Below, in pieces: positions 1 through 37,792 of a stretch of 64,000 nt of DNA. The position numbers were made by a program, and so were the translations under genes. The DNA is from Zygnema circumcarinatum SAG 698-1b. Lineage: Eukaryota > Plantae > Zygnematophyceae. Under the pieces are notes generated by a model. That model was not told the origin of the DNA. It did not search any database and saw only the letters and a program-made list of their open reading frames with translations. Position 1 is the stretch's first letter; every line of letters begins with the position of its first letter. The stretch spans positions 868,001 to 932,000 of the forward strand of contig CM074814.1 in assembly GCA_037447605.1 (NCBI GenBank). The letters are read 5' to 3'.

Positions 1-2886
<2,886 letters not shown>

Positions 2887-3698: not shown

Positions 3699-4477
3699 TC
3701 AGAGTGCCATCTGTGAGTCTGCTTGAGCCAGAGAATCTATGATCCGGTAGCGTCTGCAATCTTCGATAGGGTTTTTCAAACGCATCATTGGTATTACATG
3801 AAGGTATGATTGAGGTAATTGAGACTGTCTCCTTTGTTTACTGGAAAGGTCCATGAAATTCATAGTGGCAAAACACGATCGAGGAGTGGACCCTCCGTGA
3901 GTGGTTTCCCTCTGATGAATGTTAAGGTCATCCAGAACTGTACCTGTCAATAGATCGAAACTCCTCCTTCTTCATCAGCTCCTCCACCTCTGCGGCGGCA
4001 TAGCTTTTCAAGGCATCTACATCTAATTCATTTGAAGAACAGCGTCCACTTCCGCCTTTCTTTGCTTTGTATGCCTGAATAAGCACGAGGGCTTGACACG
4101 CGTTACTGAAGTTTCAAATAAACAGATTTTCTGATTGAACTAACTACATGGTACCGCTCAACTTGCAGTCCAGAAACGCACCATCAAGAAGAGGGTATCA
4201 GAATCAGAAAAACAAACCTCTCCTCTCTGGAAGGTTTGGCAAAAGCCCGCAGTGCACAAGCATCCGTTTCCTATGTCTCAAGTACTGCAAGACAAAACGA
4301 CGTTACAGCTTGAATATCATTCACCACTTGAGAAAAAGGACTCACGAGATAGGCAGCGTATCCTGCAGCAACAGGAACCATTTCAGTTTTGGGATGTGCC
4401 AAGGGTCCAGCTCTGGGCTGCACGCCATGATATATTTGCTCAAAGCTGTCTCGGGCGGCCGCTATATCAGTTTCCAT
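3699..4477 (-). CDS. Divergent CipC/DUF3759-like small protein (copy A, about 105 aa, no acidic tail)
   Basis: Exons 4477-4346, 4074-3944, 3753-3699, both introns GT-AG. Protein METDIAAARDSFEQIYHG...VAAGYAAYL|AYKAKKGG...LKSYAAAEVEELMKKEEFRSIDR|RYRIIDSLAQADSQMAL. Same intron phases (0, 2) as copies B-D and the same 131-nt exon 2 as copies B and D. Confidence 0.6.
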
Positions 4478-5580
4478 GATGCAGATGCTGCAAAGGAGGC
4501 AGTTGCGGCTAAGAGGGAGGGCAGAAGGAGGAAGTTAAAACGAGGCTGAAAGCCAATTTTGAAGAGGAGAGAGAGAAGATGCAACGCAGAGGTTGAGAGG
4601 GACTCTGAAGCTGCCGGCGGACCCTTGCAAACTCGCGGCTCCATGTTTTGCTGCTTCCCCGTTCGAAACTAAATAGGGGGGTTCAAACTTCGACAAAATC
4701 CATATGGAATTAGACTAAACAAGAAGTAGTACTTTTGATTTCGCCTTTAGGACCCATTTTGCGGGAATGTGGGTGCTGGTTTTGAATTTCAAAAAGCAGT
4801 GCAGATGAGGACATTTGGGACCAGCCAACGAAGGCGAACAAATGCAAAACTGTCAAGGCGACAAGAATACGAACCGGATGGTTTTCAGGGTTTTTTTTGT
4901 ATGCCCGAAATGTGGCCGACTCGAACAGAGAACTTGAGCCCAAAGGACGAAGCTGGGGTCATGCACTCGAGGGAGGGCCACACACCATTTCATTGGACTC
5001 GGATTCTTAAGGTTCGACTGATAATTGCAATTTCAAATTTATTTGCCATTACTGCTACAGCATTGAGCGTTCTTAGTCGAGTTCTAGTTGTTTCTCATGA
5101 CTAAACATTCGACTTCGTTTTTTGCCCAGCTTGAAATTATTCCCTAACATGTTCACACAACCTGCAGAAGCTTTCAAGCACAATGCCATGTGTTCCAAAT
5201 ATGCAGAGGTGCAAGCAGAAGGACACCATCATCTGGGAATCTCAGCATATTTTCCCAGCAGGAAGGCCGTTAGCCAAAGCAAGTACATCAGAAGCTCCAG
5301 ACATCGAGTTTGCACTGAAAAAAAAAAAAAACCCCGAGAAAACGAAAGCCTCCATGCCAAAAATGGCGTGGTGCTTCCTGCTCGGCCTCAGCTCTCTGCC
5401 TTTTCAAAGTCTAGAAACTGGAAATCCCAAGCCACCCACCTGCCAACTACAGCCTAAGTAAATCTCACTCGCTATGCGTAAACATCGCTAAGTACAAACC
5501 CCCCCACTCATATGTACAAGTCTCTGCCATGATTTGAAGCTCCGATCCATTGAAAACACCGTCTGCGCTTGTTTTCTCTT

Positions 5581-6459
5581 TCAGAGAACATACTGCTGCT
5601 CATAGTTGGGAGGATAGTCTGCTGCAGGTCGGGACGCGCTCTGAGGGCGAAACTTGGACTCCTCGCGGTCTGCCGCGTACTGCTCCTCGTGGCCTGCACC
5701 GGCAGAGTGGGGCCTCGAGTAGCCTCCCTCCGTCTCTCCATACTCGGGTTCATCATCTTCTTCATCATCAAATTCTTCTCCCTCCTCCTTCAGCAAGTGG
5801 TATGCTTGCTCCTTAGCATCACGCTTTGCACGCTGCCTGTACAGTAGAAGGCGATAAGAGTATGATGAGGACAAATAAAAGCGTGTGAAAGAAAATATGT
5901 TTGATTGGTTTCAGTCTTCTACGAGCCCTTCACAAAGATCAATACACATGCCGTTTTACTTTCTGCTTAATCACAGACCATAACCTAATCTCTACTCGAT
6001 ACTTCTCAAGTCTGAAAGAGATCTCAACCACGTAGTGACTCTGCGGCTTTCTCTATGCGTAACAGGAGCCAAAATGCCTTTCCTGTCAAGCCAGCCGAGC
6101 CCCTTCGTCTCAGCGATTTTCTCCACTTTTGCAGCCGCCAGTGAAGCCAACATAGACTTTATCTTTTTATGCTTCACGCGTCCTCCTCCCTCCTCGCGTT
6201 CCTTCTGGAAAGCCTGCTTATACAGAAGACGCAATAACAGAAGTCAGTTATCCCGCTGTTACATCTGCCTTCCTCAAATACATCAGCACCTGCCAATATA
6301 GCATATTCCAGCTTTTTGTACCACCTGCATAGCAGCAAATCCAGCTGCAGCTGCGATCATCTCGTGCGTCAGACTTCCCTTCCTCTCCTCTCCACCCGTT
6401 TCATCCTCATTGTAAACATCCGCATAATACTTTTCCGCTTCCGACTTTGAAAACAACAT
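5581..6459 (-). CDS. CipC/DUF3759-like protein with acidic C-terminal tail (copy B)
   Basis: Exons 6459-6325, 6213-6083, 5836-5581. Protein MLFSKSEAEKYYADVYNED...KGSLTHEMIAAAAGFAAMQ|AFQKEREEGGGRVKHKKIKSMLASLAAAKVEKIAETKGLGWLDR|QRAKRDAKEQAYHLLKEEGEEFDDEEDDE. It matches the recalled fungal CipC pattern (HEL.AGAA.F.AMK..E......PV.H...KE.LAG.AGAEVDKL.ETKGLD..DRE.AK..A...A). Keeping the frame requires a GA donor at intron 2. Confidence 0.75.
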
Positions 6460-7609
6460 GGTTGATAGGCGCTGCTAGAGACTAGAAGAGATGCAGAAGA
6501 GAGTGGCAGACACAACAACGGTCGAATGGACTAAGAGAAGAAAGACGAGCTGAAGAAGCAGAAGGATGCAGACAGAGAACACAGAGAAGTAGAAGAAAAG
6601 CAGATAAACTGGTGAGGACAACGAAGTAGCAAAAAAAGAAAAGGAGAAGCAAAAGAAGCAGCAAAGTCGAAAATCTGAAAATCTCTTTCTTTTTCTTCCC
6701 CGCTCCCTCCCTCTACCTCTCCCTCTTTATCTCTTATATCCCTTCCCCCTTTACGTAGTAGCCTGTTCTTCTACGTCTTCCGCGGTCAAAAGAGCTCCCT
6801 GCCCGGAAGTTTAAAGAGCGGCAGCTGGCAGAGATCCGGCACCATGCAGCCCTCCGATAGAGCATCTGACGCCGCAAAGGGCCGCTCCACGTGCGCCGCG
6901 AGGACTGCATGGAGCTTCTCTGTGCTGTTCTTGCTTGTCCTTTTTGGTCATCACTGTCAAAAAAACAGGAAATCTACATGAAAGAGTTTTGCACATGGAT
7001 ACCCTGGCGTTTATTTTGCAAGCGAAGGCTAATAAAACGTCTACTCTTATGTTCGTTTGTTGGTTGCCTTCACGCTGGTTCTTCATATTGGCATTTGTTG
7101 CTATGCATATTTGGTACTTTGACGTCGTGGTCATCGTGAGAGCAATGCAAACTTGTCATATTTTGTACGATTTGAGGTAGTTTTACGAGGATTACAATGA
7201 CTCGTTGATATCTTCAATCATTCCCAAGCACAGACATATCACGATTGGAATAAGAATACAAAACATTCTTGACTGCCACCCCTTCACAAATTTACACGCC
7301 AATGTGGCTAACACACATGTGGGCAAGCAAACAGGTCAGCAAAGGGGTGCTTCCAAAAAACAAATCGCAAAAATGAAGTGTAAAGACCACTTATGGCAGT
7401 AATATGGCGCATACTCTAAATCACCTCTGTTTGCGCTGCTACTGCTTGGACTGCTCAGGAACTGTAAAAGACCATATACTACAGACCATATATGTACATA
7501 CAAAGGCGGCAGTAGGCTCGATATTGTCAAGCCAAAACGAGTTAGCTCACTATCAAACTTTCCGAGGACTTGGGTCATCAGCAAGACCTAATGAGAAACT
7601 AACACCTGC

Positions 7610-8553
7610 TCAGTCGTCAGTGTCATCGTCACCATAAGGAGGTCTCCGATGCAGCCCCCCCACTTCATTTTCTTCGTCTTCATCCCTATAGCCTGAGCCC
7701 TCGTCGTCTTCATCTCTGCGATCCTCTTCCTCCTCCTCCTCTTCATCATCATCATCATCATCATCCATGTCTTCTCCCTCTTCTTTGAGCATCTCAATTG
7801 CCTGTTCATTGGCTTCGCGCTTTGCGCGGTTCCTGAAGTTGCCATGATAAAGCAGAAATCGAATCAATAGAGGTAAGAGCCTAGGAGGTACTCCGCTAAT
7901 GCAAACACTCAGAACGCTATGAGAAGTTAACCCTATTCAGAAAAATTGCAATTCCGGACATCCCTTGTCCATGCGCAATCAATTTTAGCATAAGTAGTTA
8001 TAAACTGATACAGCACTAATTACTCGCTAAGCATTCTCTTGCAGTTCCATGTTCCAAATGTTACGAGAATTTCCTGCCAGCATATCCAGTTTATTATATA
8101 CGCAGCAGTCTGCATCATGATGTGATGAATGCCTTGCCTGTCAAGCCAGTCCAAGCCCTTCGTCTCCGCGAGCTGGTCCACCTTCGCTGCCGCAAGGCCC
8201 GCCAGAAGAGACTTTATTTTCTTATGCTTGACAGGCTCGTCGCCCTCCTCCTCCTTCCGCTTCTGGTACGCCTGCTCATGACAAAGTGGAAAAAAGAAAA
8301 AAAAAAAAAAAAAGGGCCCTTCATACGCATATTATGCTAAAATTCAGTCAGATAAAATCTGCAGCCCAGAATTCGAGAATTCCATCACCTGCATCGCTGC
8401 ATATCCAGCCGCAGCCGCGATGATTTCATGAGTGAGGCTCCCTTTCCTCTTTTCCTGACCCCCTTCATCCTCTCCGTCGCCTTCATCTCCTTCCTCCTCG
8501 TCGTTGTAAAGATCCGAATAATATTCCGCCGCCTCAGACCTTGAAAACAGCAT
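7610..8553 (-). CDS. CipC/DUF3759-like protein with acidic C-terminal tail (copy C)
   Basis: Exons 8553-8389, 8271-8138, 7832-7610. Motifs GSLTHEIIAAAAGYAAMQ|AYQKRKEEEGDEPVKHKKIKSLLAGLAAAKVDQLAETKGLDWLDR|NRAKREANEQA, then poly-D/E. Intron 2 has a GC-AG donor (CAG|GCAAGG). Confidence 0.8.
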
Positions 8554-9316
8554 GGTCCCGCAAACAGACTAAAAAGTAGACACAAATTACAAAAAATACG
8601 CACAGAGCGGAGGTTCAGCCTGCTACGACTTCTGCTTCCTGAAAATATTCTAACCTTCTTTCTCTCCTTTGGAGACCAACAAAAGTGGACCTCCACAGGC
8701 GAAGCCATCACTCCACTGCAGCATTTTGCCAGAATGCAGCCGTTCGATCGGCGGCATCCAGGGAGAACGGACGGCCACGATTGCTTTAGATTACGAGGTG
8801 CTTCTAGAGGCATGCATCGCCATGCCGATCGGCGACACCTGACTTGAGAGGCCCATTGCATGCTTGGTAATATTACCGCCGGCAATATGAGCATAGTCCA
8901 TCAAGCCGGATACCACGCATAATAAAATAATAATAAAAATGATAATTGCCGAGTAATAGGTAGTCCCTAATGGTGGATAGTTATTAGTCTATTCTAGAAT
9001 GCTTGACCCTTAATACGGTAATCAATTGGATTGAAGGGTCGAAGGCTGTATCATACTTTATTGTACCGTACCGTGAACAGGCCCTCAAGAGGGTTCGAAT
9101 TTGCGGCCGAAGTCGGAAAGCAGATGTGTGAGTGAGCATTTCAAGAATTTCAACTTCTCTTCATACGGTAATGTTCGATGTCTCGAACAAACAATTTCGA
9201 CTTCGAGTGTTGTAACTTTCAAACTTAACTAGTGAACAGTGTGAAATTACAGAAAGGGTTTCAGTGCACTCGCTGACTCTGACCCTCCATTCATTATTCG
9301 CTTGCATGGAATTGGG

Positions 9317-9715
9317 TGTAGAACTGGAGCCTTTGTCTCTCTCACTATCATCCATCTCATCTTTGTGGGCCTTCCCTTTCTTAGACATGTTCAACAATCT
9401 CAAGCATCCAAGGAGTAGAACATATATCCGCAAAAGCTTTATTCCAAAACTTAACAAGAGCTCAGCATCCTATGCTTTCCTCAAAGCTCAAGTTAGCAAA
9501 GACACACAAAACACGAGTCTTATATCTGTCCTTCCTAAAACCTCGCCGCCAAAATGCATAACATGATGAACAACACGAACCATACGATCAAAGGTCTTGG
9601 GATTCACACTACTTCCTAAGCACTCAACACGTGTTACTCAGCTCGTACAATTCCGTACACAATATCCGAACAAACATTCCGTACGACTCTATGTACGATT
9701 GTACGGATCTCAACA
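9317..9715 (-). repeat. Copia LTR (3' terminal copy)
   Basis: 399 bp, near-identical to 14126-14524 and 18938-19336; private SNP at 9321. Confidence 0.95.
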
Positions 9716-9739
9716 ATCCCCCTCTGATCCGTGCAATCG

Positions 9740-12700
9740 CTACATCATTCCTATCAGTTGAACACATGTGCGAAGAATTGCTCCAGATACTCCTTTTGTC
9801 ATCATATCTGCCGCCTGTTCGTTCGTCCGTACGAATTCCACTCTGATCTTCTTCTTCTTGACCTGCTCCCTTATAAAGTGATAATAGAGATCAATGTGTT
9901 TTGACCTCTTGTGGTTGACGGGATTCTCTGTGAGTGCAATCGCTGATTTATTGTCGATCAAAATCAAAATTGGATCTTGTGCATATCCACACTCCTGAAA
10001 AAACTTCTAAGCCATATCGCCTCCTTTGCCGCGTGACAAGCTGCCATGTACTCTGACTCAGTACTGGACAACGCAACTGTCTCCTGTAACTTCGAATTCC
10101 ATGTGATACATCCTCCTCCACACATGAACACATATCCTGACGTGGACCTACCAGTATCAATGTCTCCTCCCCAGTCGGCATCTGAATATCCGTACACTTG
10201 AATAGACTCACCAGTGCTGAACGATAGTCCGTACTCTGCCGTCCCCTTCACATAGCGAAAAATTCTCTTCACCGCCTCCCAATGTGCGACTCCAGGATTA
10301 TTCAGAAAACGACTCACATTGTTGACTGCTTTTGCAAGGTCGGGTCTGGTACCTGTGGTGAGGTACATTAGGCTCCCAATGGCCTGTCGATAAGGCACTC
10401 GCTGCATCTCCACCTCTTCTTCTTTGGTCTTAGGGCAATCAGCTGCTGATAGCTTTGCACTGGGATCCATCGGTGAGGAACACGGATGGGCATCCTGCAT
10501 TCGGAACTTCTCCAAGACATCTTTTGCATACTGCTCCTGGGTGAGTAAAATCTTGCCATTCTGCCCCCTCTTAATCTGAACTCCAAGTAAAAAGTTCGCT
10601 TCTCCAATGTCTGACATTTTGAAATTTCGTTGAAGCATCTCCTTCAGTGCTGCAATGCTTGTTGTAGACTTGCTGACAATAATAATGTCGTCTACATAAA
10701 TTCCAATGAAGATCCGTTCCTCTCCTTCTCCTTTGATGTAGACTGAAGGGTCTGTTTTGAATTGCCTGTATCCATTCTTCTGCATTACGTCATCCAACTT
10801 CTTATTCCAGGCTCGAGGTGCTTGCTTAAGTCCATAAATTGTCCGATGTAGCTTGCAGACTTTTCCTGGTACTTTCATCACTCCCTCTGGCATCTCCATG
10901 TAAATCTCCTCAGTTAATTCTCCATTTAAGAAGGCTGTCTTTACATCCATTTGATGAATATGCATCGATTCAGCTACTGCAATAGCCACTAACGATCTCA
11001 AAGAATTGAATTTCACAACTGGAGCAAAAGTCTCCTGGTAATCTATGCCTTCTGTCTGTGAATATCCTTTAGCTACCAGTCTTGCCTTGTACCTTTCAAT
11101 CGATCCATCTGCCTTGCGCTTGATTTTGAAAGTCCACTTGCATCCGATTGCATTTCTCCCACTTGGCAACTCCTCCAACGACCACGTGTCATTTTCCTTT
11201 AAGCTCTGCAACTCATCCTTGATAGCTTGCTTCCATTTCTCTTTATCTGGTCCTTCAATGGCCTCCTGAAATGATTGTGGCTCATCTGGTTTTGCTCGTG
11301 TGCAGGCTGCAACGTAGGCAAAATTATCTGTATCTCTAGGAATCCTTGTGAGCGCATCCAGTGATTCTGCTGCCCTTCGAAAGTTCCTTGGGCGATCATT
11401 TTCTGATGGTGTGAACGCCTCCCGCTCTGCTATGCGTGCACTTCGCCTCAAGGTAGGAATCTCCTCTCTTGACAATTCTTCAGGTGATTCTGATTCTTCC
11501 AACCTTGACTCCAAATCATCTCTTGGTTCAGCATCCCTTTTATGCAAAATTGTGGGGCTTGGGTCTTCCTTAGCGCTCTCCTCATCCTGCACTTCTTCAC
11601 TTAACCCCTCTACACTCCATGAGTCCATGTCATTTCTGGTGACTTCTCCTTTCTCCACGAATTGAACATCCCTGCTGCGCCTGACTGCATTATTCTGAGC
11701 ATCCCAAATCCTGTAGGTCAAACTCTCATGATCATATCCAACCAGCCATCCTGTCCATGCGGTAGGATTCATCTTCCCTCTCCTCTGAGCATGTGGAATA
11801 TTGACAAAGCATTTGGACCCCCACACACGTAAGTGAGAAATTGTGGGCTTGGACCCGGTCCAAAGCTCGTCTGGAACCTTGCCATCATTCAAGGCTGATG
11901 TGGGACATCGATTTCTCACATGAATCGCTGCATTGATGGCCTCTGCCCAAAAACTCAAATGCAGATTGGAACCATGAAGCATTGATCGTGCCATTTCCAC
12001 CAAAGTGCGATTCAATCTTTCTGCTGCACCATTGCTTTCAGGACAGTGAGGTGCAGTAAATTGCCTTTTTATCCCTGCGTCCTTACAATGCTGCATAAAT
12101 GCATTTGAGGTAAACTCTCCTCCATTATCTGTCCTCAAAGCTGCAATTTTCTCCCCTGTTTCTGTCTCCACCACTCGCTGCCAATGCTTAAAGCAATCTA
12201 GCGCTGCAGATTTCCTCTTAAGAAATGCTACCCAACACTTACGGGAATAATCATCCATGAAGGTGATGAAATATTCTGCACCGCTCTTGCTTGCAGGTGA
12301 AATTGGGCCACAAATGTCAGAGTGAACCAGCTCCAACTTCCTCGTTGCTCGGTACTTCCTTTCTCCATGGGTCTTGTGCGGTAGTTTGTGAGACTTGCAC
12401 TTCAAGCAGTCTTCACATGACATCTTGGGACTCCAGTCTCCTCTCATCTCCTCAATTCCAATCACTGAATTCTTCTCTACCATGCTTTTCATTCCCCAGT
12501 AGCTGAGATGTCCTAATCTCTTGTGCCACTTCTCCAGATTCTTCTCCACATCCACTTGATTTGCAGTCACTTGTAGGTATTTGGGTTTCTCCCACTTCAA
12601 GAATGCAGTCTGTCCTTGTCTGAATCCTTCTCCAACTAGATTCCATGTGCTCCTTTCTCTCATCTGAATCCCTCCTATGTCAAATAGTGTCACTACCCCT

Positions 12701-14197
12701 TGATCAAGCATATAGCAGACTGAGTAAAGATTGTGGATCATTTGTGGAGAGTACAGAACATCTGTGAGAACTGTTTCTACATTCCCTTCCTTTGTTTTTA
12801 GAATCAATCTCACTCTTCCACTCTCTGTCACACTGAACCTTTGTCCGCTTGCTGTCTGAACAGTGATAGGCACATTTAGAGTATGTATCTCTTCAAACAT
12901 CTCCTTCTCTGTACAAATATGAGCACTTGCTCCTGAATCTATAATCCAGTCTGATCTCTTGATGGAAAGGTGATTGACTGAAGAGACTCCAAAGCTTGTG
13001 GCATATCCTTCGGTCTGTTCAGTAGTTGCAGAATTTGCGGTACTTCTGCTCATACAATTCCTTGCTGAATGTCCAGGCTGGCCACAGGTATAGCAACTAC
13101 CTCTGAACGTTGTATTTCCTTGGCTGTTGCGATTTTGAGGGCCGCCTCCATATGCTGCAACTCCTCTGCCTCCGCCTGCACGACAGTCTCTTGATGTGTG
13201 GCCGTTTCCGCCACATGTATAGCAGGTGATTTCTGAAAACCTTCCACCGTTGTCAGACGAATTGAATCCTGTTCCTGCTCTTCCTCTGTAGCTGGGAAAG
13301 CTTCCTCCTTGAAAACCTCCACCTCTACCTCTGAATCCACCTCTGCTGTTGTGTCCACCTCTCGGTTCATATCCTCCTCTCGGTTCATATCCTCCTCTGC
13401 TACTCATGTATCCTCCTCTATTTGCATGGCCTCCTCTGCTTGACTGTCCTCCTCCCCGACCTCTATAATTTCCACAAGTCATGGTTGCAAATGCCGTCTC
13501 TTGCCTCCCTTTTCCCTCCTTTCTTATCCTCCTTAGCCTGCAATCATACTCGATAATCCTAGCCTTTACATCCTCTAATGACATCCCTGATTGATGCAAG
13601 AAATTTGTAAGGTTATCGGCCGTCATCTCGTATTTGGAGGACAAACTCTGAAGATACATATAGGCCTGATCGCTTACGATAGACCTTCCGCCAGCCAAGG
13701 TTTTCTTTAACGCCATCAACCGGGACATTGTAATTGTCTGACCCTTCTGCCTCCCATCCCGACATAGACGAAATCTCCGTATAATGCCTTTATCCCTTTG
13801 TGTCAAGTTTTCGCAGAAAGTAAATGTTTTGGAGCTTCGTCCACATTTCTGCTGCAGTTAGTCCTCTAAGTGCTAGTCCGTGAGGGGATTTCATGGAAGA
13901 GAGTATTAAGGCTTTTGCTTTACCGTTTCTTTTCTTCCAACTTGCAAACTCCTTGGGCTCTTTCTCCTTGTCTGGTGTGGCTTCAGTACCATCCACCAAT
14001 TCCATCAACTCCTTTGCTTCCAACACAGCTTCCAGATTTTGGCTCCAAGAAAGGTAGTTCGTCCCATCAAACAAAGTAACTAAGTATTTCCCTATATCAT
14101 CATCTCCTGACGCTCTGATACCACTTGTAAAACTGGAGCCTTTGTCTCTCTCACTATCATCCATCTCATCTTTGTGGGCCTTCCCTTTCTTAGACAT
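9740..14197 (-). pseudogene. Frameshifted copia gag-pol polyprotein (left unit)
   Basis: More than 99% identical by eye to the right unit. It has a 1-nt deletion near 10008 (RNase H) and a multi-indel patch at about 13670-13870 (gag), splitting the ORF into 13790..14266, 9964..13806 and 9740..9967. Confidence 0.9.
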
Positions 14198-14524
14198 GTT
14201 CAACAATCTCAAGCATCCAAGGAGTAGAACATATATCCGCAAAAGCTTTATTCCAAAACTTAACAAGAGCTCAGCATCCTATGCTTTCCTCAAAGCTCAA
14301 GTTAGCAAAGACACACAAAACACGAGTCTTATATCTGTCCTTCCTAAAACCTCGCCGCCAAAATGCATAACATGATGAACAACACGAACCATACGATCAA
14401 AGGTCTTGGGATTCACACTACTTCCTAAGCACTCAACACGTGTTACTCAGCTCGTACAATTCCGTACACAATATCCGAACAAACATTCCGTACGACTCTA
14501 TGTAGGATTGTACGGATCTCAACA
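14126..14524 (-). repeat. Copia LTR (shared central copy)
   Basis: 399 bp. On the minus strand the right unit's PPT precedes it and the left unit's PBS follows it. Private SNP at 14505. Confidence 0.95.
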
Positions 14525-14548
14525 ATCCCCCTCTGATCCGTGCAATCG

Positions 14549-17500
14549 CTACATCATTCCTATCAGTTGAACACATGTGCGAAGAATTGCTCCAGATACT
14601 CCTTTTGTCATCATATCTGCCGCCTGTTCGTTCGTCCGTACGAATTCCACTCTGATCTTCTTCTTCTTGACCTGCTCCCTTATAAAGTGATAATAAAGAT
14701 CAATGTGTTTTGACCTCTTGTGGTTGACGGGATTCTCTGTGAGTGCAATCGCTGATTTATTGTCGATCAAAATCAAAATTGGATCTTGTGCATATCCACA
14801 CTCCTGAAAAAACTTCTTAAGCCATATCGCCTCCTTTGCCGCGTGACAAGCTGCCATGTACTCTGACTCAGTACTGGACAACGCAACTGTCTCCTGTAAC
14901 TTCGAATTCCATGTGATACATCCTCCTCCACACATGAACACATATCCTGACGTGGACCTACCAGTATCAATGTCTCCTCCCCAGTCGGCATCTGAATATC
15001 CGTACACTTGAATAGACTCACCAGTGCTGAACGATAGTCCGTACTCTGCCGTCCCCTTCACATAGCGAAAAATTCTCTTCACTGCCTCCCAATGTGCGAC
15101 TCCAGGATTATTCAGAAAACGACTCACATTGCTGACTGCTTTTGCAAGGTCGGGTCTGGTACCTGTGGTGAGGTACATTAGGCTCCCAATGGCCTGTCGA
15201 TAAGGCACTCGCTGCATCTCCACCTCTTCTTCTTTGGTCTTAGGGCAATCAGCTGCTGATAGCTTTGCACTGGGATCCATCGGTGAGGAACACGGATGGG
15301 CATCCTGCATTCGGAACTTCTCCAAGACATCTTTTGCATACTGCTCCTGGGTGAGTAAAATCTTACCATTCTGCCCCCTCTTAATCTGAATTCCAAGTAA
15401 AAAGTTCGCTTCTCCAATGTCTGACATTTTGAAATTTCGTTGAAGCATCTCCTTCAGTGCTGCAATGCTTGTTGTAGACTTGCTGACAATAATAATGTCG
15501 TCTACATAAATTCCAATGAAGATCCGTTCCTCTCCTTCTCCTTTGATGTAGACTGAAGGGTCTGTTTTGAATTGCCTGTATCCATTCTTCTGCATTACGT
15601 CATCCAACTTCTTATTCCAGGCTCGAGGTGCTTGCTTAAGTCCATAAATTGTCCGATGTAGCTTGCAGACTTTTCCTGGTACTTTCATCACTCCCTCTGG
15701 CATCTCCATGTAAATCTCCTCAGTTAATTCTCCATTTAAGAAGGCTGTCTTTACATCCATTTGATGAATATGCATCGATTCAGCTGCTGCAATAGCCACT
15801 AACGATCTCAAAGAATTGAATTTCACAACTGGAGCAAAAGTCTCCTGGTAATCTATGCCTTCTGTCTGTGAATATCCTTTAGCTACCAGTCTTGCCTTGT
15901 ACCTTTCAATCGATCCATCTGCCTTGCGCTTGATTTTGAAAGTCCACTTGCATCCGATTGCATTTCTCCCACTTGGCAACTCCTCCAACGACCACGTGTC
16001 ATTTTCCTTTAAGCTCTGCAACTCATCCTTGATAGCTTGCTTCCATTTCTCTTTATCTGGTCCTTCAATGGCCTCCTGAAATGATTGTGGCTCATCTGGT
16101 TTTGCTCGTGTGCAGGCTGCAACGTAGGCAAAATTATCTGTATCTCTAGGAATCCTTGTGAGCGCATCCAGTGATTCTGCTGCCCTTCGAAAGTTCCTTG
16201 GGCGATCATTTTCTGATGGTGTGAACGCCTCCCGCTCTGCTATGCGTGCACTTCGCCTCAAGGTAGGAATCTCCTCTCTTGACAATTCTTCAGGTGATTC
16301 TGATTCTTCCAACCTTGACTCCAAATCATCTCTTGGTTCAGCATCCCTTTTATGCAAAATTGTGGGGCTTGGGTCTTCCTTAGCGCTCTCCTCATCCTGC
16401 ACTTCTTCACTTAACCCCTCTACACTCCATGAGTCCATGTCATTTCTGGTGACTTCTCCTTTCTCCACGAATTGAACATCCCTGCTGCGCCTGACTGCAT
16501 TATTCTGAGCATCCCAAATCCTGTAGGTCAAACTCTCATGATCATATCCAACCAGCCATCCTGTCCATGCGGTAGGATTCATCTTCCCTCTCCTCTGAGC
16601 ATGTGGAATATTGACAAAGCATTTGGACCCCCACACACGTAAGTGAGAAATTGTGGGCTTGGACCCGGTCCAAAGCTCGTCTGGAACCTTGCCATCATTC
16701 AAGGCTGATGTGGGACATCGATTTCTCACATGAATCGCTGCATTGATGGCCTCTGCCCAAAAACTCAAATGCAGATTGGAACCATGAAGCATTGATCGTG
16801 CCATTTCCACCAAAGTGCGATTCAATCTTTCTGCTGCACCATTGCTTTCAGGACAGTGAGGTGCAGTAAATTGCCTTTTTATCCCTGCGTCCTTACAATG
16901 CTGCATAAATGCATTTGAGGTAAACTCTCCTCCATTATCTGTCCTCAAAGCTGCAATTTTCTCCCCTGTTTCTGTCTCCACCACTCGCTGCCAATGCTTA
17001 AAGCAATCTAGCGCTGCAGATTTCCTCTTAAGAAATGCTACCCAACACTTACGGGAATAATCATCCATGAAGGTGATGAAATATTCTGCACCGCTCTTGC
17101 TTGCAGGTGAAATTGGGCCACAAATGTCAGAGTGAACCAGCTCCAACTTCCTCGTTGCTCGGTACTTCCTTTCTCCATGGGTCTTGTGCGGTAGTTTGTG
17201 AGACTTGCACTTCAAGCAGTCTTCACATGACATCTTGGGACTCCAGTCTCCTCTCATCTCCTCAATTCCAATCACTGAATTCTTCTCTACCATGCTTTTC
17301 ATTCCCCAGTAGCTGAGATGTCCTAATCTCTTGTGCCACTTCTCCAGATTCTTCTCCACATCCACTTGATTTGCAGTCACTTGTAGATATTTGGGTTTCT
17401 CCCACTTCAAGAATGCAGTCTGTCCTTGTCTGAAGCCTTCTCCAACTAGATTCCATGTGCTCCTTTCTCTTATCTGAATCCCTCCTATGTCAAATAGTGT

Positions 17501-19009
17501 CACTACCCCTTGATCAAGCATATAGCAGACTGAGTAAAGATTGTGGATCATTTGTGGAGAGTACAAAACATCTGTGAGAACTGTTTCTACATTCCCTTCC
17601 TTTGTTTTTAGAATCAATCTCACTCTTCCACTCTCTGTCACACTGAACCTTTGTCCGCTTGCTGTCTGAACAGTGATAGGCACATTTAGAGTATGTATCT
17701 CTTCAAACATCTCCTTCTCTGTACAAATATGAGCACTTGCTCCTGAATCTATAATCCAGTCTGATCTCTTGATGGAAAGGTGATTGACTGAAGAGACTCC
17801 AAAGCTTGTGGCATATCCTTCGGTCTGTTCAGTAGTTGCAGAATTTGCGGTACTTCTGCTCATACAATTCCTTGCTGAATGTCCAGGCTGGCCACAGGTA
17901 TAGCAACTACCTCTGAACGTTGTATTTCCTTGGCTGTTGCGATTTTGAGGGCCGCCTCCATATGCTGCAACTCCTCTGCCTCCGCCTGCACGACAGTCTC
18001 TTGATGTGTGGCCGTTTCCGCCACATGTATAGCAGGTGATTTCTGAAAACCTTCCACCGTTGTCAGACGAATTGAATCCTGTTCCTGCTCTTCCTCTGTA
18101 GCTGGGAAAGCTTCCTCCTTGAAAACCTCCACCTCTACCTCTGAATCCACCTCTGCTGTTGTGTCCACCTCTCGGTTCATATCCTCCTCTCGGTTCATAT
18201 CCTCCTCTGCTACTCATGTATCCTCCTCTATTTGCATGGCCTCCTCTGCTTGACTGTCCTCCTCCCCGACCTCTATAATTTCCACAAGTCATGGTTGCAA
18301 ATGCCGTCTCTTGCCTCCCTTTTCCCTCCTTTCTTATCCTCCTCAGCCTGCAATCATACTCGATAATCCTAGCCTTTACATCCTCTAATGACATCCCTGA
18401 TTGATGCAAGAAATTTGTAAGGTTATCGGCCGTCATCTCGTATTTGGAGGACAAACTCTGAAGATACATATAGGCCTGATCGTTTTCTACGATAGACCTT
18501 CCAGTTTCAGTCAGTGTTTTCAGAACGCTATCAAATCTGACATTGTAATTGTCTAGACTTTCTGTCTCCCCCATCCTGATAGACGTAAATTCTGCATACG
18601 CTTTTATCCCTTGTGCTGAAGTTTTCGCAGAGTAAATGTTTTGGAGCTTCTTCCACATTTCTGCTGCAGTTAGTCCTTTAAGTGCTAGTCCGTGAGGGGA
18701 TTTCATGGAAGAGAGTATTAAGGCTTTTGCTTTACCGTTTCTTTTCTTCCAACTTGCAAACTCCTTGGGCTCTTTCTCCTTGTCTGGTGTGGCTTCAGTA
18801 CCATCCACCAATTCCATCAACTCCTTTGCTTCCAACACAGCTTCCAGATTTTGGCTCCAAGAAAGGTAGTTCGTCCCATCAAACAAAGTAACTAAGTATT
18901 TCCCTATATCATCATCTCCTGACGCTCTGATACCACTTGTAAAACTGGAGCCTTTGTCTCTCTCACTATCATCCATCTCATCTTTGTGGGCCTTCCCTTT
19001 CTTAGACAT
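14549..19009 (-). CDS. Intact copia gag-PR-IN-RT-RNaseH polyprotein (right unit)
   Basis: Uninterrupted ORF with two CCHC knuckles, protease WIIDSGAS, integrase HKRLGH/CEDC/HSDICGP/RTDNGGEF, RT YVDD and RNase H YSDADW, in copia domain order. First ATG (MSKKGK) at 19009. Confidence 0.97.
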   Translation of the reverse strand: MSKKGKAHKDEMDDSERDKGSSFTSGIRASGDDDIGKYLVTLFDGTNYLSWSQNLEAVLEAKELMELVDGTEATPDKEKEPKEFASWKKRNGKAKALILSSMKSPHGLALKGLTAAEMWKKLQNIYSAKTSAQGIKAYAEFTSIRMGETESLDNYNVRFDSVLKTLTETGRSIVENDQAYMYLQSLSSKYEMTADNLTNFLHQSGMSLEDVKARIIEYDCRLRRIRKEGKGRQETAFATMTCGNYRGRGGGQSSRGGHANRGGYMSSRGGYEPRGGYEPRGGHNSRGGFRGRGGGFQGGSFPSYRGRAGTGFNSSDNGGRFSEITCYTCGGNGHTSRDCRAGGGRGVAAYGGGPQNRNSQGNTTFRGSCYTCGQPGHSARNCMSRSTANSATTEQTEGYATSFGVSSVNHLSIKRSDWIIDSGASAHICTEKEMFEEIHTLNVPITVQTASGQRFSVTESGRVRLILKTKEGNVETVLTDVLYSPQMIHNLYSVCYMLDQGVVTLFDIGGIQIRERSTWNLVGEGFRQGQTAFLKWEKPKYLQVTANQVDVEKNLEKWHKRLGHLSYWGMKSMVEKNSVIGIEEMRGDWSPKMSCEDCLKCKSHKLPHKTHGERKYRATRKLELVHSDICGPISPASKSGAEYFITFMDDYSRKCWVAFLKRKSAALDCFKHWQRVVETETGEKIAALRTDNGGEFTSNAFMQHCKDAGIKRQFTAPHCPESNGAAERLNRTLVEMARSMLHGSNLHLSFWAEAINAAIHVRNRCPTSALNDGKVPDELWTGSKPTISHLRVWGSKCFVNIPHAQRRGKMNPTAWTGWLVGYDHESLTYRIWDAQNNAVRRSRDVQFVEKGEVTRNDMDSWSVEGLSEEVQDEESAKEDPSPTILHKRDAEPRDDLESRLEESESPEELSREEIPTLRRSARIAEREAFTPSENDRPRNFRRAAESLDALTRIPRDTDNFAYVAACTRAKPDEPQSFQEAIEGPDKEKWKQAIKDELQSLKENDTWSLEELPSGRNAIGCKWTFKIKRKADGSIERYKARLVAKGYSQTEGIDYQETFAPVVKFNSLRSLVAIAAAESMHIHQMDVKTAFLNGELTEEIYMEMPEGVMKVPGKVCKLHRTIYGLKQAPRAWNKKLDDVMQKNGYRQFKTDPSVYIKGEGEERIFIGIYVDDIIIVSKSTTSIAALKEMLQRNFKMSDIGEANFLLGIQIKRGQNGKILLTQEQYAKDVLEKFRMQDAHPCSSPMDPSAKLSAADCPKTKEEEVEMQRVPYRQAIGSLMYLTTGTRPDLAKAVSNVSRFLNNPGVAHWEAVKRIFRYVKGTAEYGLSFSTGESIQVYGYSDADWGGDIDTGRSTSGYVFMCGGGCITWNSKLQETVALSSTESEYMAACHAAKEAIWLKKFFQECGYAQDPILILIDNKSAIALTENPVNHKRSKHIDLYYHFIREQVKKKKIRVEFVRTNEQAADMMTKGVSGAILRTCVQLIGMM

Positions 19010-19336
19010 GTTCAACAATCTCAAGCATCCAAGGAGTAGAACATATATCCGCAAAAGCTTTATTCCAAAACTTAACAAGAGCTCAGCATCCTATGCTTTC
19101 CTCAAAGCTCAAGTTAGCAAAGACACACAAAACACGAGTCTTATATCTGTCCTTCCTAAAACCTCGCCGCCAAAATGCATAACATGATGAACAACACGAA
19201 CCATACGATCAAAGGTCTTGGGATTCACACTACTTCCTAAGCACTCAACACGTGTTACTCAGCTCGTACAATTCCGTACACAATATCCGAACAAACATTC
19301 CGTACGACTCTATGTACGATTGTACGGATCTCAACA
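18938..19336 (-). repeat. Copia LTR (5' terminal copy)
   Basis: 399 bp, followed on the minus strand by the PBS; outer flank TTGGG matches the left TSD. Confidence 0.95.
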
Positions 19337-19922
19337 TTGGGCTGCAGAGCGGGCCTGCACTGCAGCCACATCAACAACGCGTGGGAAATTGAGATCGTTT
19401 TTTTTTGTCCACAATAAGCAGCCAGCGGTGGAACCCTCCTGGCGCAAGCCATTAAAACGAGGAAAATGCGATCAGACAGCCAATCATGTTGTTTGTATAC
19501 AACTGTATACAGTTTTTTCTTAAAAACAATCAAATTCATTTTCTTTTTCTTCTTCAAAAAACATAGAAAATGTCGTCCTCACTGACCACTCACAGGGCCC
19601 AAAGTCATTTCAAAGTGTATGCAAGTCATCGAGGAACATGTCTTAACAGAGAGTAATCATTATGGGCGGGCCCTAAAGGCAGCCCTGCAGAACTGATACT
19701 AGGACCCCTCCCTCCCCGCGCATGTGACTTGTCCTCCTACTGACAAGCCTTAAAACTACGCAAAAACGAAAACCTAATGCACTTCTGCAACAGAAGACGA
19801 AGACTGCAAAGAACTGCTGCACACAGCAGATTCCACTTTCACCCCAACGCTCTACCGTCCTCTGCCCCTCCCAAACTCAAATTCAATCTTGCCAAAAAAG
19901 TAAACACGCGGCGATGCACCTC

Positions 19923-20103
19923 CTAGCGGTAGTATGGAGGATATCCCGCCCCCCCTCGGGGCACATCTGGAGGGGGGTAACTTGGGGGGTAGCCGTAGCC
20001 GGGCCCTCCACGGTACGGATCATAGCCGGGCCTGCCATATGGAGGAGGGGGTCCCGGATAGCTCTCCGGATATGGAGGATATTGAAAAAGACGGAGTGGA
20101 CAT
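19923..20103 (-). other. Putative small Pro/Gly/Tyr-rich coding segment with an apparent 1-nt frameshift
   Basis: One frame reads QYPPYPESYPGPPPPYGRPGYDPYRGGPGYGYPPSYPPPDVPRGGAGYPPYYR*. The ATG at 20103 is one base out of frame across a T5 run. TATATAAA at 20190-20197. Confidence 0.4.
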
Positions 20104-20262
20104 TGTACGATCAAAGTGAGGACAGAGAGAGTTGACACAAAAGACAGATGTGTGATTAACGTGGTGAAAAGTACAATGTCCTAATCTGTTTTATATACAT
20201 TGCGGCTAGAGCTACACGACAAAAGAGTGTGGAACTAGCCTGAGTAAGGGCGNNNNNNNNNN

Positions 20263-22523
20263 TGAATTTGGCCACCGGGGCATACGTTTCGGTGAAGTCG
20301 ATGCCTTCAAGCTGAGAGAACCCCTTGGCTACAAAACGGGCTTTATAGCGGTCAACCGAGCCGTCGGATTTTTGTTTGATTTTAAATACCCATTTAGAGC
20401 CGATGGCGCGACGACCGGGTGGGAGGGGGACAAGGTCCCACGTGTTGTTTTTCTGAAGGGAGAGGAATTCAGCATCAGCGGCAGCTTTCCAAAGGGCGGC
20501 GTCAGGGGTGCGAAGGGCGGCAGCAAAAGTAGGGGGGGCAGACGAGGAGGCGATGAAGGCCATGGCGGAGGAAAGGAGGGCATGGGCGGCAGTGTCGATA
20601 ATTTTCCACGTGGGTCACGATGGCGAGCATGCGTGGCGGGGGGGGCAGGCAGAGGGAGCCGGAAGGAGAGTCCCAAGGAGGCGGGGTGGCGGGAGGCCGC
20701 CACGGGTGAAGGGGAAAGTCGCAGCCGAGAAGCGGCGAGGGGAAAAAGGGAGGGGGTTTGTATGAGGGAAGGGTCCGCCCCGCTCGGGTGGTGGAAAGCT
20801 CCCTCTGAACAGAAGAGGGAGGGTCGAGCAGAGAGGACGAGGGGGAGGGGGGGGGAGCGGGGGGAGGGGGGTCGACGGAGGGGGACGCAGGGACACCGAA
20901 GGGAGGGGAAGGGGGGGCGGCGACCGGGGGCGGGCCAAAAGGAATGTCGGCGGCCAATGGGGGAGCGGCCGCTGGGAGGGGAATGATATCCAACGGCCAC
21001 GAGGTGGGGAATCAGACGCAAGATTGGGATCTCGCGAGGAAGTCGGCGGGTGTACTGCGGGCGGTGGCGTAATGAAGTCACACGAGGAGCCTCATTAAAT
21101 GCGACGCCGCTACGAAGTACAATTCATTTGTCGCGACAACACCGTGATACCTATAGGCCTTGGACGAAGCTGCAGAAGCCAAGAAAATGCCGCTACACGG
21201 CCCGCTGGCCCCATTTGCCGACGACCGGACGAGATTCAGGTACCGTGCCCGCAAACCAAAGATACCTGAGGTGGGAGACTTAGGTTTGCCGCCCGCCGCC
21301 TCGTAGGAGTGCCGCGAAGGGCGTAGCGGGAAAGGTTCCGGGCGTACGTGGAGATGGCTTCCGCTTCAGAAGGCTATAGGGAGGTCGGCAAAATGAAGCA
21401 TAGAAGCGAGCCATGTAGAATGAATTAGAGTTAAGCATTCGTGACTCCCATTTCTTTGGGGGGTCAACAAGGGAGGCTGATGATGCGATGGGTGATCTTT
21501 GAAGTGAAAGCGAAGGTATTTAAAGGCGTTGGACTAAACTGGCGTTATGTCAGTCTGAGGTCTTGATCACGGCGGCCCAGAAGGGTCTGCCACGGGCTTT
21601 GAACTCTTGGAAGCGGGAGAAAACGTCAGACTTGTGAGCGATGGGAAAAACGTGGGAAAAATGAGTCGCTTGGTCAATGAAAGTGACAAAGTATGATGCG
21701 CCGCCGAGGCTAACATCACGCATAGGGCCACAGACATCAGAATGAATGAGTGCCAGAGGCTCAGAGACAAGGGTGGAGCTTGAGGGAAAAGGCAATCTGG
21801 TCATTTTTCCTTGAATACAGCCTGAACAAAAGTCTAACTTGTCGGTAGAGAAAGAGTCTAAACCTAACACTTAGCCCTGTCCGAGAGTTCTGTGGCTACT
21901 TTCAGCATGGTGGCCTAAGCGGAGGTGCCACCGAGCAAAGGTAAGGGGGGGGTCAGTGGTGTGAGCATGGGCGTGCCCAAGGAGGCTGCAAAAGATGTGA
22001 GGGAAAACAAGCGGCCGGTTTTGCGGCCGTGCCCAACTACAGCGTCTGGGGTGAAGAAAGTAACCCCGTCTGGCCTAAATAGAGCTGAAATGCCTAAAAT
22101 CAGGATGGAGGCTACTGAAAACAGATTCTTCGCGAGGCCATCCACCAGGTAGACGTCATCGATGATGAAGCGCTGGCCGTCAATTAGAGTGGAAACCTGG
22201 CCGACATGCGTGGCAGTCAAGGAGCGGTTATCCCCTAAGAAAATGGTCATGGGGAGAGGGAGGGGAGAGAGCCGAGAGAACCAGTCACGACGAAAAGTTA
22301 GATGATGGGAGGCACCCGAGTCAATAAGCCAAGTGGAGTCAGGGAGAGAAGGGTCATACCCAAAAGGGTCCGCGGCCAGAAAGGCGTGACCGAACTCGGG
22401 AGCACCATAGACGACACCCGGGGTGGGAGGCGGGCCGGCCGGGGGGGGGAAGCCGGGGTGAAGAGAGGGGTGTACGGCGGGCGGCGGCGGCGGGACCAAG
22501 GGAGCGGTAGGGAACGTGAGGGA
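20263..22523 (-). mobile_element. Degenerate internal fragment of a second, GC-rich Ty1/copia family, bounded by N gaps
   Basis: Protease WLIDSGASHH; integrase CSGCIQGK and HSDVCGP...FVTFIDQ; RT start WKAAADAEFLSLQKNNTWDLV...KARFVAKGFSQLEGIDFTETYAPV. Many frameshifts and stops, no LTR seen. Confidence 0.9.
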
Positions 22524-22616
22524 NNNNNNNNNNAGAGCTACACGACAAAAGAGTGTGGAACTAGCCTGAGTAAGGGCGGCTGGGTGTAAGCACAGAGCCG
22601 CAAAGGCACAACTAAA

Positions 22617-23975
22617 CTAACAGTGAAAGTACAAGCTAAAAGGACAGCCAGGTGTAAGTACACGTGGCTGGGAAAACGACAAAATAGTACGACAAAACTG
22701 AGAATGTCGGATTCTCAACAGAGGATAGGGCCCTCCATATCCGGAGTAGCGGCGAGGGTCACGGTCGCCCTCGTATGGGTCACTGCCCTCTTCTGCATAG
22801 TCCCTGCGTGGACCATAGTCTGAGGGTCTCCTTTTGGAGTATCTTCTCCCCCGTTTCCTGTCATCATCATCATCGTCAGACTCCGAGGAGTCTTCTTCTT
22901 CATCGGAGTCATCATCGTCATCATCCTCATCGTCATCAAATTCTTCGCCCTCCTCTTTCAACAAGTGGGCTGCCTGCTTCCTGGCGTCACGCTCAGCACG
23001 CTTCCTGAAGTTTTTAAAAGAAGAGATAAATGAAAACAACAACAAATCAGACATTTACTTGCAATAGCAGTGGCAGGAAAAATGTTGCCAAGTTTAGAAG
23101 GGAGAGCAGGGACGTTAGTTAAGCTGGACAAGAACGACCAGCATGCACACATAAACATAAAAATATGTGAGCAATTTCTAATAGCTTCGCAATCCGATGC
23201 TGGGTTGATTGCAGATATAACTACCATATGGTAAAGAAACCACCAGCCCAGAAAGCGCGCCAAGGGACTGCCCAGCACTCCAAACTCGTTGCTCTTGAAC
23301 AAAATACAGTTCAAAAATCTGCTGTGCCAGAAAAGACATAGCATGAGGAGTTCAAAAAATCACAACAGTAGCAATCTTTTCGAGTGCGTAGATGCCTTTC
23401 CTGTCAAGCCAGCTGAGGCCCTTTGTCTCTGCAAGGTTCGCCAACTTGGCTGACACGAGTGCCGCCAAAGCAGATTTGATCTTCTTATGCTTAACAGGTC
23501 CTCCGCTCTGCTCCTGCTGCTTCTGGAAAGCCTGTCAATTGCGCTCAGAATTTGAGTTCATAAGTTGCAGCACAGCAGTAAACCAATCCGCCAATTAAAC
23601 ACTATCAGAAGTCAGACATCCAATAATAGGATGACAGCAGATTCGCCCTCGGAAGGGTCTTGGCAGATTTATATACCAAGATGCTGCTGGTGCTTATAGT
23701 CTTATATCACAATTGATCTGCGAATTACCAATAGATGATCAAAATTGAGCAAGCTTTCACATTTGAAGCCGAATAACATGACTTTTCATTTTACAACTTC
23801 AAAGGAATCCGGTACATCCGATCACCTGCATGGCTGCAAATCCAGCTGCAGCTGCAATCATTTGATGAGTCCAACTCCCTTTTCTTTCCGGTGGAACCTC
23901 TTCATCATCCTCATATCCACCATCGTTGTAAACATCGTCATAATATTTTTTCGCTTCTGGCTTTGAAAACAACAT
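22617..23975 (-). CDS. CipC/DUF3759-like protein with acidic and R/G/Y-rich tail (copy D)
   Basis: Exons 23975-23826, 23531-23401, 23004-22617 (3' end uncertain). Protein MLFSKPEAKKYYDDVYND...KGSWTHQMIAAAAGFAAMQ|AFQKQQEQSGGPVKHKKIKSALAALVSAKLANLAETKGLSWLDR|KRAERDARKQAAHLL. Keeping the frame requires a GA donor at intron 2. Confidence 0.75.
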
Positions 23976-34500: not shown

Positions 34501-35211
34501 TAAGGTTACAAGAACTTGAACCTCACCTTCTTTCGAAGAGCGTAACCTGCATTGAAAATGATGATTGGGAGTAAACCGTAGAAGAAAATCTCTGGGCTGA
34601 AAGTGAGGTCGAGGTCCAGCTTCAGAGCTAGAGTAATTCCGCCAAATAACATTCCCAAAAACATCGCCGAAGCTGTTCCCAAATACAAAGCCAAAGCAAA
34701 ATCAGCCATTATTGGCCAATGCTGCTCAGCTTTCTTAATACAAGAGAAGCGCTTTCACTAATAATAAAAGCCTTAATTCAGAGGGACAGGAACAGAGACA
34801 TCCTAAAAATGGCCAACCTGATCAGCGTCATATCTCGACTTTACAAATAAAAATTGAAGCACGATGCGACCAGATAATGTGATCATTCGTGCAGTTCAAC
34901 GGAGCTATGGAAGGTCAAAAGGCAAAAGAAGCGTCTGACGTTTTCTGAATCAAAATACTTACAATGGAATGTCAAGTAGCATTTAAGTCTCTTAGAGTCA
35001 AAATAAGAACAGTACATCACCACGTGCAGAACGGCCTTCTACTTGCATTAAAAATCAAGCAAACCAAGCAGCCATCAACCGACCCTTCGTCCTTACCTGA
35101 CTCGGGAAAATAGTTGAACTTGAGTTGCTTCGTTATATACGCGGCCATCAAAGCTATGACCATCAAAAACGAGCAGACGATCACACTTGTTGAAACAGTC
35201 TTAATAGCCAT
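30639..35211 (-). CDS. NHX: Na+/H+ antiporter (CPA1, NHX5/6-NHE8-like) fused to a PsbP-like domain, copy 2 (complete)
   Basis: Exons 35211-35097, 34672-34527, 34263-34056, 33669-33581, 33303-33252, 32957-32516, 32139-31716, 31544-30639. Internal exon sizes 146/208/89/52/442 are identical to copy 1, and all phases join. Confidence 0.88.
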
Positions 35212-35247
35212 TGCTGCTGTCGCTCTTCCGACACCTCAAAAACTCGC

Positions 35248-35292
35248 CCTCTCCCTCTCCCTCTCCCTCTCCCTCTCCCTCTCCCTCTCCGT
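35248..35292. repeat. (CTCTCC)n hexanucleotide repeat just upstream of the NHX copy 2 start codon
   Basis: Seen directly. Confidence 0.85.
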
Positions 35293-35469
35293 CTCCCCTT
35301 CCCTGGCCAGCCCTCCCTCTCTTCCTCCCTCACTCCCTTCCGTACAGGCAGCCCGCCGTACTGCCATGGCCGCAAGGCATCAATCACCTTCTTTTGGCGC
35401 CGCAGAGATGCCTTCCCCCCGCCGGCCTCGGCGCCCTTCTACAAGTGGCTGACCAACCACTCACATTCT

Positions 35470-37755: not shown

Positions 37756-37792
<37 letters not shown>

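Follow-up and report, generated by a model that had tools for sequence, protein, structure and literature searches.

The window analysed here, a 64,000-nucleotide stretch of contig CM074814.1 (positions 868,001 to 932,000; assembly GCA_037447605.1) of Zygnema circumcarinatum SAG 698-1b, carries an array of four co-oriented minus-strand genes, g1 to g4, related to the CipC family (Pfam PF12585, DUF3759). Judged by their predicted products, g2, g3 and g4 are clear members of this family, and g1 is read here as a divergent paralog rather than a clean family member, its paralogy resting on position and shared introns. As a CipC-family cluster, the array extends the family to a lineage from which it had not been known. 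The cluster is native to the nuclear genome and old, and with moderate confidence this old native tandem array is attributed to a horizontal gain from a fungus into the algal lineage. An initial annotation of the stretch had spoken of fungal-type genes in a plant genome; the host is a streptophyte alga, not a land plant.

Family membership and gene structure

Family membership was assessed by scoring the exons one by one against PF12585, whose gathering score is 25 bits. Exon 2 exceeds this cut-off in g2 (41.7 bits), g3 (52.3 bits) and g4 (42.2 bits), and exon 1 of the same genes reaches 25.9, 24.9 and 21.1 bits, respectively; the exons of g1, scored in the same way, give no match to PF12585 even at E ≤ 10. 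A family hidden Markov model (HMM) built from 12 sequences and applied to the models joined from exon coordinates returns 110.6 bits for g2, 111.5 bits for g3, 98.0 bits for g4 and 42.7 bits for g1, the last as a colinear match over match states 6-100. In alignment, the window exons are colinear with full-length chytrid and Apatococcus proteins. The near-invariant residues of the family (H, E, A, G, K, A, E, K, G, D, A) are retained by g2-g4, as are the motifs THE/THQ, AAAAGF, VKHKKIK, AETKGL and WLD...A, and the Asp position of VDKL is occupied by E in g2, D in g3 and A in g4. The g1 product is 26-37% identical to that of g2; the family positions H...E, AAG, K and D...A are preserved in it, and the ETKG loop is lost. 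The proposed DUF3759/CipC assignment is thereby upheld for g2-g4 through PF12585, and g1 is recognisable on the family HMM only as a divergent member. The core motif that had been described as common to the cluster applies to g2-g4 but not to g1, which is without ETKG, and the "four copies" are four genes of the same plan, made up of three conserved copies and one highly divergent one.

The gene models were derived from six-frame lists of open reading frames (ORFs), three-frame reads and inspection of the junctions, and each comprises three exons (Table 1). Exons were searched singly, and the models joined from coordinates were used for frame checks, HMM scoring, trees and the estimation of nonsynonymous and synonymous divergence (dN/dS). 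Intron 1 is a phase-0 GT-AG intron that follows ...AAMQ (AAYL in g1) in all four genes, and intron 2 is in phase 2 and splits the Arg codon of (W)LDR, again in all four; on the family HMM these positions correspond to match states 40 and 83 and are common to g1-g4. Frame and junction reading thus agrees with the earlier description of four co-oriented genes with a common three-exon plan. The coordinates then given hold for g2, g3 and g4, but the stop of g1 lies at 3547, since position 3699, previously taken as its end, adjoins the exon 3 acceptor. In the g4 model, the last ~35 codons (22617-22720, LLRIRHSQFCRTILSFSQPRVLTPGCPFSLYFHC) are hydrophobic and Cys-containing, in contrast to the acidic tails that end g2 and g3. 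This part of the model is doubtful, and the gene may in truth end elsewhere if a stop was lost or an intron escaped notice. No fifth copy was found in the 64-kb window with the family HMM on all six frames or by tblastn with the exons.

Table 1. Coordinates of the array genes and of the features in the spacer between g3 and g4 (positions within the window)
Feature	Position	Strand	Details
g1, divergent DUF3759-like paralog, 135 aa	3547..4477	-	exons 4477-4346, 4074-3944, 3691-3547
g2, predicted DUF3759/CipC-like gene, 173 aa	5581..6459	-	exons 6459-6325, 6213-6083, 5836-5581
g3, predicted DUF3759/CipC-like gene, 173 aa	7610..8553	-	exons 8553-8389, 8271-8138, 7832-7610
g4, predicted DUF3759/CipC-like gene, 222 aa as modelled	22617..23975	-	exons 23975-23826, 23531-23401, 23004-22617
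Tandem Ty1/copia retrotransposon, LTR-internal-LTR-internal-LTR	9317..19336	-	from repeats and self-BLAST
Two N gaps around a GC-rich copia fragment	20253..22533		gaps 20253-20262 and 22524-22533; fragment 20263-22523

Both introns of g1 are of the GT-AG type, and in g2-g4 intron 2 is predicted to use a GA or GC donor. With a slash marking the exon-intron boundary, the donors of intron 2 read AG/GTACAG in g1, AG/GAAAGG in g2, AG/GCAAGG in g3 and AG/GAAAGG in g4, all at one homologous position; the first intron base on the minus strand is 3943, 6082, 8137 and 23400, respectively. The dinucleotide AG precedes the donor site in all four genes, and A, A and G occupy positions +3 to +5 in g2-g4. 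The start of exon 3 encodes a conserved helix, (Q/N/K)RA(K/E)R(D/E)A..QA, which is in frame only with the GT, GA, GC and GA donors. Canonical substitutes were sought and set aside. For g4, no phase-2 GT or GC donor leaves exon 3 in frame. In g2, a GT located nine codons downstream could serve if paired with a second acceptor, but only the homologous GA position gives a solution that fits every copy.

Distribution, phylogeny and origin

The distribution of the family was drawn from three large searches: a HMMER search with an exon 2 profile against 1.84 billion representative proteins, and two profile searches of 5.8 billion proteins. The profiles of the latter two combined the window exons, each in a row of its own, with one or a few full-length relatives; scoring covered the 8000 candidates with the most words in common, and the best 100 and 120 matches were listed. 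The HMMER search returned 88 matches, the best of only 52 bits, and therefore no close relative; in the two profile searches, all of the best 100 and all of the best 120 matches belong to PF12585. The best pairwise identity of g2-g4 to database relatives is 42-54%. Among the matches listed, fungal holders come from Ascomycota, Basidiomycota, Mucoromycota, Zoopagomycota, Chytridiomycota and Blastocladiomycota, and other holders are trebouxiophyte green algae of three genera (Apatococcus lobatus, A. fuscideae, Coccomyxa elongata and Symbiochloris irregularis), bdelloid rotifers (Adineta, Rotaria and Didymodactylos), tardigrades (Hypsibius and Paramacrobiotus, some forms with a signal peptide) and protists, the last represented by four EukProt transcripts. 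Two bacteria, Nocardia aurantia and Nocardia sp. alder85J, also carry DUF3759 proteins, 49-50% identical to g2 and g3, which they presumably hold by transfer. No land plant or other streptophyte relative is present among the 88, the best 100 or the best 120 matches, and no named chlorophyte outside Trebouxiophyceae is found among the matches listed. The expectation of a strongly fungal and otherwise patchy distribution was thus confirmed. Its wording "mainly in fungi" is right in that fungi dominate the matches, but needs to be widened to Trebouxiophyceae, bdelloids, tardigrades, Nocardia and protists. For the exon 2 ORF of g2, a word search gave no match; its candidates had been confined to proteins of 44-140 aa, so that it is uninformative. 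In the literature, no paper was found that describes CipC/DUF3759 from algae, tardigrades or rotifers, or that treats it as a transferred gene.

Such a patchy distribution favours horizontal gain. The opposing explanation, ancient vertical inheritance, holds that DUF3759 was present in an early eukaryote or in the green ancestor, survived in this alga and in Trebouxiophyceae, and was lost many times in other lineages, including land plants, and we consider it unlikely. It draws on the occurrence of DUF3759 in several unrelated eukaryote groups, on the age and fully host-like composition of the window genes, and on the roughly equal distance (the same 42-54% identity) that separates the window clade from fungal, bacterial, tardigrade and algal members. 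Yet land plants, other named streptophytes and non-trebouxiophyte chlorophytes are absent from the matches listed even though they are very well sampled in NCBI and UniRef, so that vertical descent demands very many independent losses, and bdelloids, tardigrades and Nocardia are classic recipients of transferred genes.

Intron positions bear on the same choice. Exon structures were mapped from the genomic loci of seven relatives, with each position expressed as match state and phase on the family HMM. The window introns lie at 40/0 and 83/2, and none of the seven mapped relatives, fungal ones included, shares either position. Apatococcus and Coccomyxa share introns at 31/1 and 69/0, and the gene is therefore old within Trebouxiophyceae. 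Under vertical descent it is awkward that two distant trebouxiophytes have two positions in common while neither position is common to them and the window. Among the fungi, the intron count is seven in Synchytrium, five in Cryptococcus, three in Sanghuangporus and two in Aspergillus, none of them at the window positions, and Rhizopus has none at all; the tardigrade genes have one phase-0 intron directly after the signal peptide. The pattern fits a gain of introns after the arrival of an intron-free or differently spliced copy, and the unshared introns argue mildly against common descent of the window and trebouxiophyte genes.

Trees were computed from alignments of 107-108 columns and are unrooted; g1 was left out of the later ones because of its end branch of 3.1 and its deviant composition. 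In every tree g2-g4 form one clade (support up to 100/100) on a stem of 0.6-0.8 substitutions per site, and in every free tree the trebouxiophyte genes stand apart from them, contrary to what a single green inheritance would lead one to expect. A 74-row tree made g2-g4 sister to a single Rhizopus sequence (95/91), and a donor within Rhizopus or Mucoromycota was considered. Once 20 Mucoromycota rows were added, Rhizopus moved into a 100/100 Mucorales clade far from g2-g4; the sister relation was an artefact of sampling or long branches.

A horizontal gain from a carrier other than a fungus, that is, a trebouxiophyte alga, a protist or an actinobacterium, is less probable still. In its favour, the pairwise matches to g2 and g3 that rank best include Nocardia proteins, whose genes are intron-free, as those of a bacterial donor would be, and trebouxiophytes and EukProt protists have the family as well. 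Nocardia nevertheless groups elsewhere in a 95-row tree, its two entries stand against hundreds of fungal ones among the matches listed, bacteria being more likely recipients, and the identities to these carriers are no higher than those to fungi.

A fungal source remains the preferred explanation, and several results weigh against it. The 95-row tree gives the window clade no supported sister and places it only loosely among Agaricomycetes; with so short an alignment, so long a stem and no supported sister, no donor can be named. Forcing the window and trebouxiophyte genes into one clade costs 12-16 log-likelihood units and is not rejected (approximately unbiased test, p-AU 0.27 and 0.19), which is the main phylogenetic point in favour of vertical inheritance. 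As the tree is unrooted, nesting within fungi cannot be demonstrated from its topology. Intron positions vary even among fungi, so that unshared introns are modest evidence. Three of the four copies require a non-GT donor at intron 2. The absence of the family from other streptophytes depends on how well streptophyte algae are represented in the databases and on the best 100-120 matches listed. Of the signs by which a transfer is judged, patchy distribution and physical integration in the host genome were both found, and supported nesting inside a donor clade was not. The fungal acquisition put forward by the initial annotation therefore keeps the backing of a patchy, fungal-dominated distribution, but the tree supplies no donor and leaves a single green clade standing.

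Genomic context, age and the spacer of the array

Genes g1-g3 lie on gap-free sequence together with a GT92 gene, and g4 lies on gap-free sequence together with an NHX-PsbP gene, after which come GWD1 and PPR genes. The G+C content of third codon positions (GC3) is 0.46-0.57 in g1-g4 against 0.49-0.56 in the neighbouring genes, and the introns of g1-g4 are AT-richer than the exons, as expected for real introns. Pairwise synonymous divergence (dS) among g2-g4 is 1.28-1.89, near saturation, and comparisons with g1 are saturated. To judge from their codons, g2, g3 and g4 are kept under purifying selection (dN/dS 0.18-0.26). Exon DNA is 67-82% identical among the copies, and in a self-comparison the introns are undetected as repeats. 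Neither contamination nor a recent duplication in the assembly needs to be considered further. The local amplification proposed at the outset is borne out as a four-gene tandem array, and the spliceosomal introns and the GT92, NHX and GWD1 neighbours of matching composition do argue, as had been suggested, against contamination.

The spacer between g3 and g4 holds two kinds of insertion (Table 1). The first is a tandem copia array whose three long terminal repeats (LTRs; 9317-9715, 14126-14524 and 18938-19336) are 399 nt each and 99.6-99.7% identical. An intact polyprotein ORF of 1509 aa (14549-19078) has gag, integrase and RVT_2 domains, and the second internal copy is shorter (ORF 9964-13806). 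This array is a young insertion or a product of unequal recombination. The second is the 2.26-kb fragment between the N gaps, which has 56% GC and opposite GC skew and derives from a different copia element, with Pol_BBD in ORF 21915-22499. The gaps are flanked on their outer sides by two identical copies of a 45-nt sequence, 20208-20252 ahead of the first and 22534-22578 beyond the second, and the fragment therefore looks like a patched-in contig. The second gap sits 84 nt 3' of the g4 stop and the first is also in the g3-g4 spacer; both lie outside coding sequence, so that no reading frame crosses a gap. Since g4 is linked to g1-g3 across scaffold joins, the linkage of the complete array is plausible and likely, short of proof. 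Without the spacer insertions, the spacing of the array would be regular at about 2 kb.

The two gaps and the patch-like insert are also what could suggest that the cluster is an artefact, either a contaminant fungal contig or a chimeric scaffold. This is very improbable: gap-free sequence joins g1-g3 to GT92 and g4 to NHX-PsbP, the composition matches that of the neighbours, and with a best database identity of about 50% no known fungus matches. In addition, the divergence of the paralogs arose in situ, and the copia element that separates them is of host type.

Two repeat features of the flanking regions may be recorded separately. The first coding exon of the upstream GT92 gene (1440-1580, plus strand) contains an in-frame run of ~45 Asp codons, a GAT microsatellite. 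At 35150-35400 and 37700-37800, long CT/GA dinucleotide runs appear as (SL)n in ORFs by the PPR gene region.

If the gene was indeed acquired from outside, the history of the array may have run as follows. An ancestor gene would have reached the algal lineage by horizontal transfer long ago, with a fungus as its probable source. After entry it would have acquired host composition, gained its two own introns and duplicated, the copies eventually reaching near-saturated synonymous divergence. The array would at first have had a period of ~2 kb, until the young tandem copia element split g3 from g4. Within the array, g1 has kept the exon plan, but its sequence has drifted so far that Pfam does not recognise it, and its ETKG loop is gone.

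Protein properties and comparison with known systems

The products of g2-g4 are strongly hydrophilic, with a grand average of hydropathy (GRAVY) of -1.15, -1.56 and -1.25, respectively, against -0.49 for g1. Gly makes up 8.7% (g2), 9.2% (g3), 7.2% (g4) and 5.2% (g1), and Asp plus Glu account for 22-36% in g2-g4, with 35.8% in g3, whose tail is very acidic. No signal peptide or membrane segment was detected in g2-g4, and no hydrophobic 19-mer exceeds 0.96. Hydrophilins, in the sense of Garay-Arroyo et al. 2000, are reportedly defined by Gly above 6% and high hydrophilicity; by these composition criteria, g2-g4 qualify and g1 fails. The fold was predicted on an Apatococcus member with a family alignment that included the window exons as rows, and consists of helices at 21-52, 59-81 and 85-110 (mean predicted local distance difference test, pLDDT, of 78; about 90 over residues 40-105). 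On this model, the predicted architecture of g2-g4 is an all-helical DUF3759 domain of roughly 100 residues with a very acidic, disordered tail behind it. Among solved structures there is no PDB sequence match at E ≤ 1 and no Foldseek match at E ≤ 0.001.

Fungal CipC is abundant, associated with stress and with concanamycin, and of unknown function (PMC3424117). By analogy, the best guess for g2-g4 is that they may act as cytosolic, non-enzymatic proteins with a protective or stress-adaptor role. A protective role is suggested because the hydrophilin-like make-up of these proteins coincides with the presence of the family in desiccation-tolerant animals and aeroterrestrial algae. In the scenario outlined above, the products would be abundant cytosolic stress-response proteins like fungal CipC, possibly protective under water deficit or a related stress; this is the weakest step of the proposal. 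Two points weigh against it: many DUF3759 members fall short of the hydrophilin criteria, which only part of the family satisfies, and the link to desiccation is correlative, with no structural analogue found.

It is tempting to speculate, at a low level of confidence, that DUF3759 is a mobile gene for life out of water, which passed from fungi to bdelloids, tardigrades, aeroterrestrial trebouxiophytes, soil Nocardia and a streptophyte alga and in each of them was kept, and its copies multiplied, as a protectant that acts in the cytoplasm or is secreted. Should this be true, the algal array would represent an independent gain that aids subaerial stress tolerance in a lineage next to land plants. 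There is active discussion of how genes gained from microbes by the algal relatives of land plants may have eased life on land; most reported cases are bacterial, and the cluster would add a candidate of fungal origin. The desiccation-tolerant and aeroterrestrial holders also offer a lead to the role of a widespread fungal protein that has been without a function for over twenty years. The value of the case is limited in that its donor is not resolvable and the distribution across streptophyte algae rests on database representation.

Compared with known systems, the likeness of g2-g4 to hydrophilins and late embryogenesis abundant (LEA) proteins is one of composition only, with no sequence relation to LEA families, and for the DUF3759 core the prediction is one of folded helices rather than of full disorder. 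Like the window genes, the DUF3759 genes of bdelloids and tardigrades have expanded within their lineages, occur in tandem pairs and include longer forms with a tail (160-250 aa). Paramacrobiotus metropolitanus, for example, has a tandem pair (locus L004, 567-3629) in which a signal peptide is followed by a phase-0 intron. Unlike the window products, several tardigrade forms have an N-terminal signal peptide, and the tails of the bdelloid and tardigrade proteins are not acidic and the proteins fall into separate, well-supported clades.

The trebouxiophyte genes of Apatococcus lobatus, A. fuscideae, Coccomyxa elongata and Symbiochloris irregularis are, like those of the window, green-algal, nuclear and intron-bearing. 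They lie on megabase contigs with ordinary algal genes around them, and Coccomyxa elongata has a tandem pair (locus L002, 3001-5953). Their proteins differ from those of the window in being short (104-111 aa) and without the acidic tail. Fungal CipC, represented by Aspergillus nidulans CipC and Aspergillus fumigatus AFUA_5G09330, has the same domain over its whole length and is small, hydrophilic and predicted to be all-helical. Its tails are short or rich in Gly, Gln and Tyr, whereas those of the window proteins are long and strongly acidic. From fungal CipC the window genes are further set apart by their residence in a streptophyte alga, their own intron positions, their arrangement as a four-gene tandem array and an identity of only about 42-54% to any database protein.

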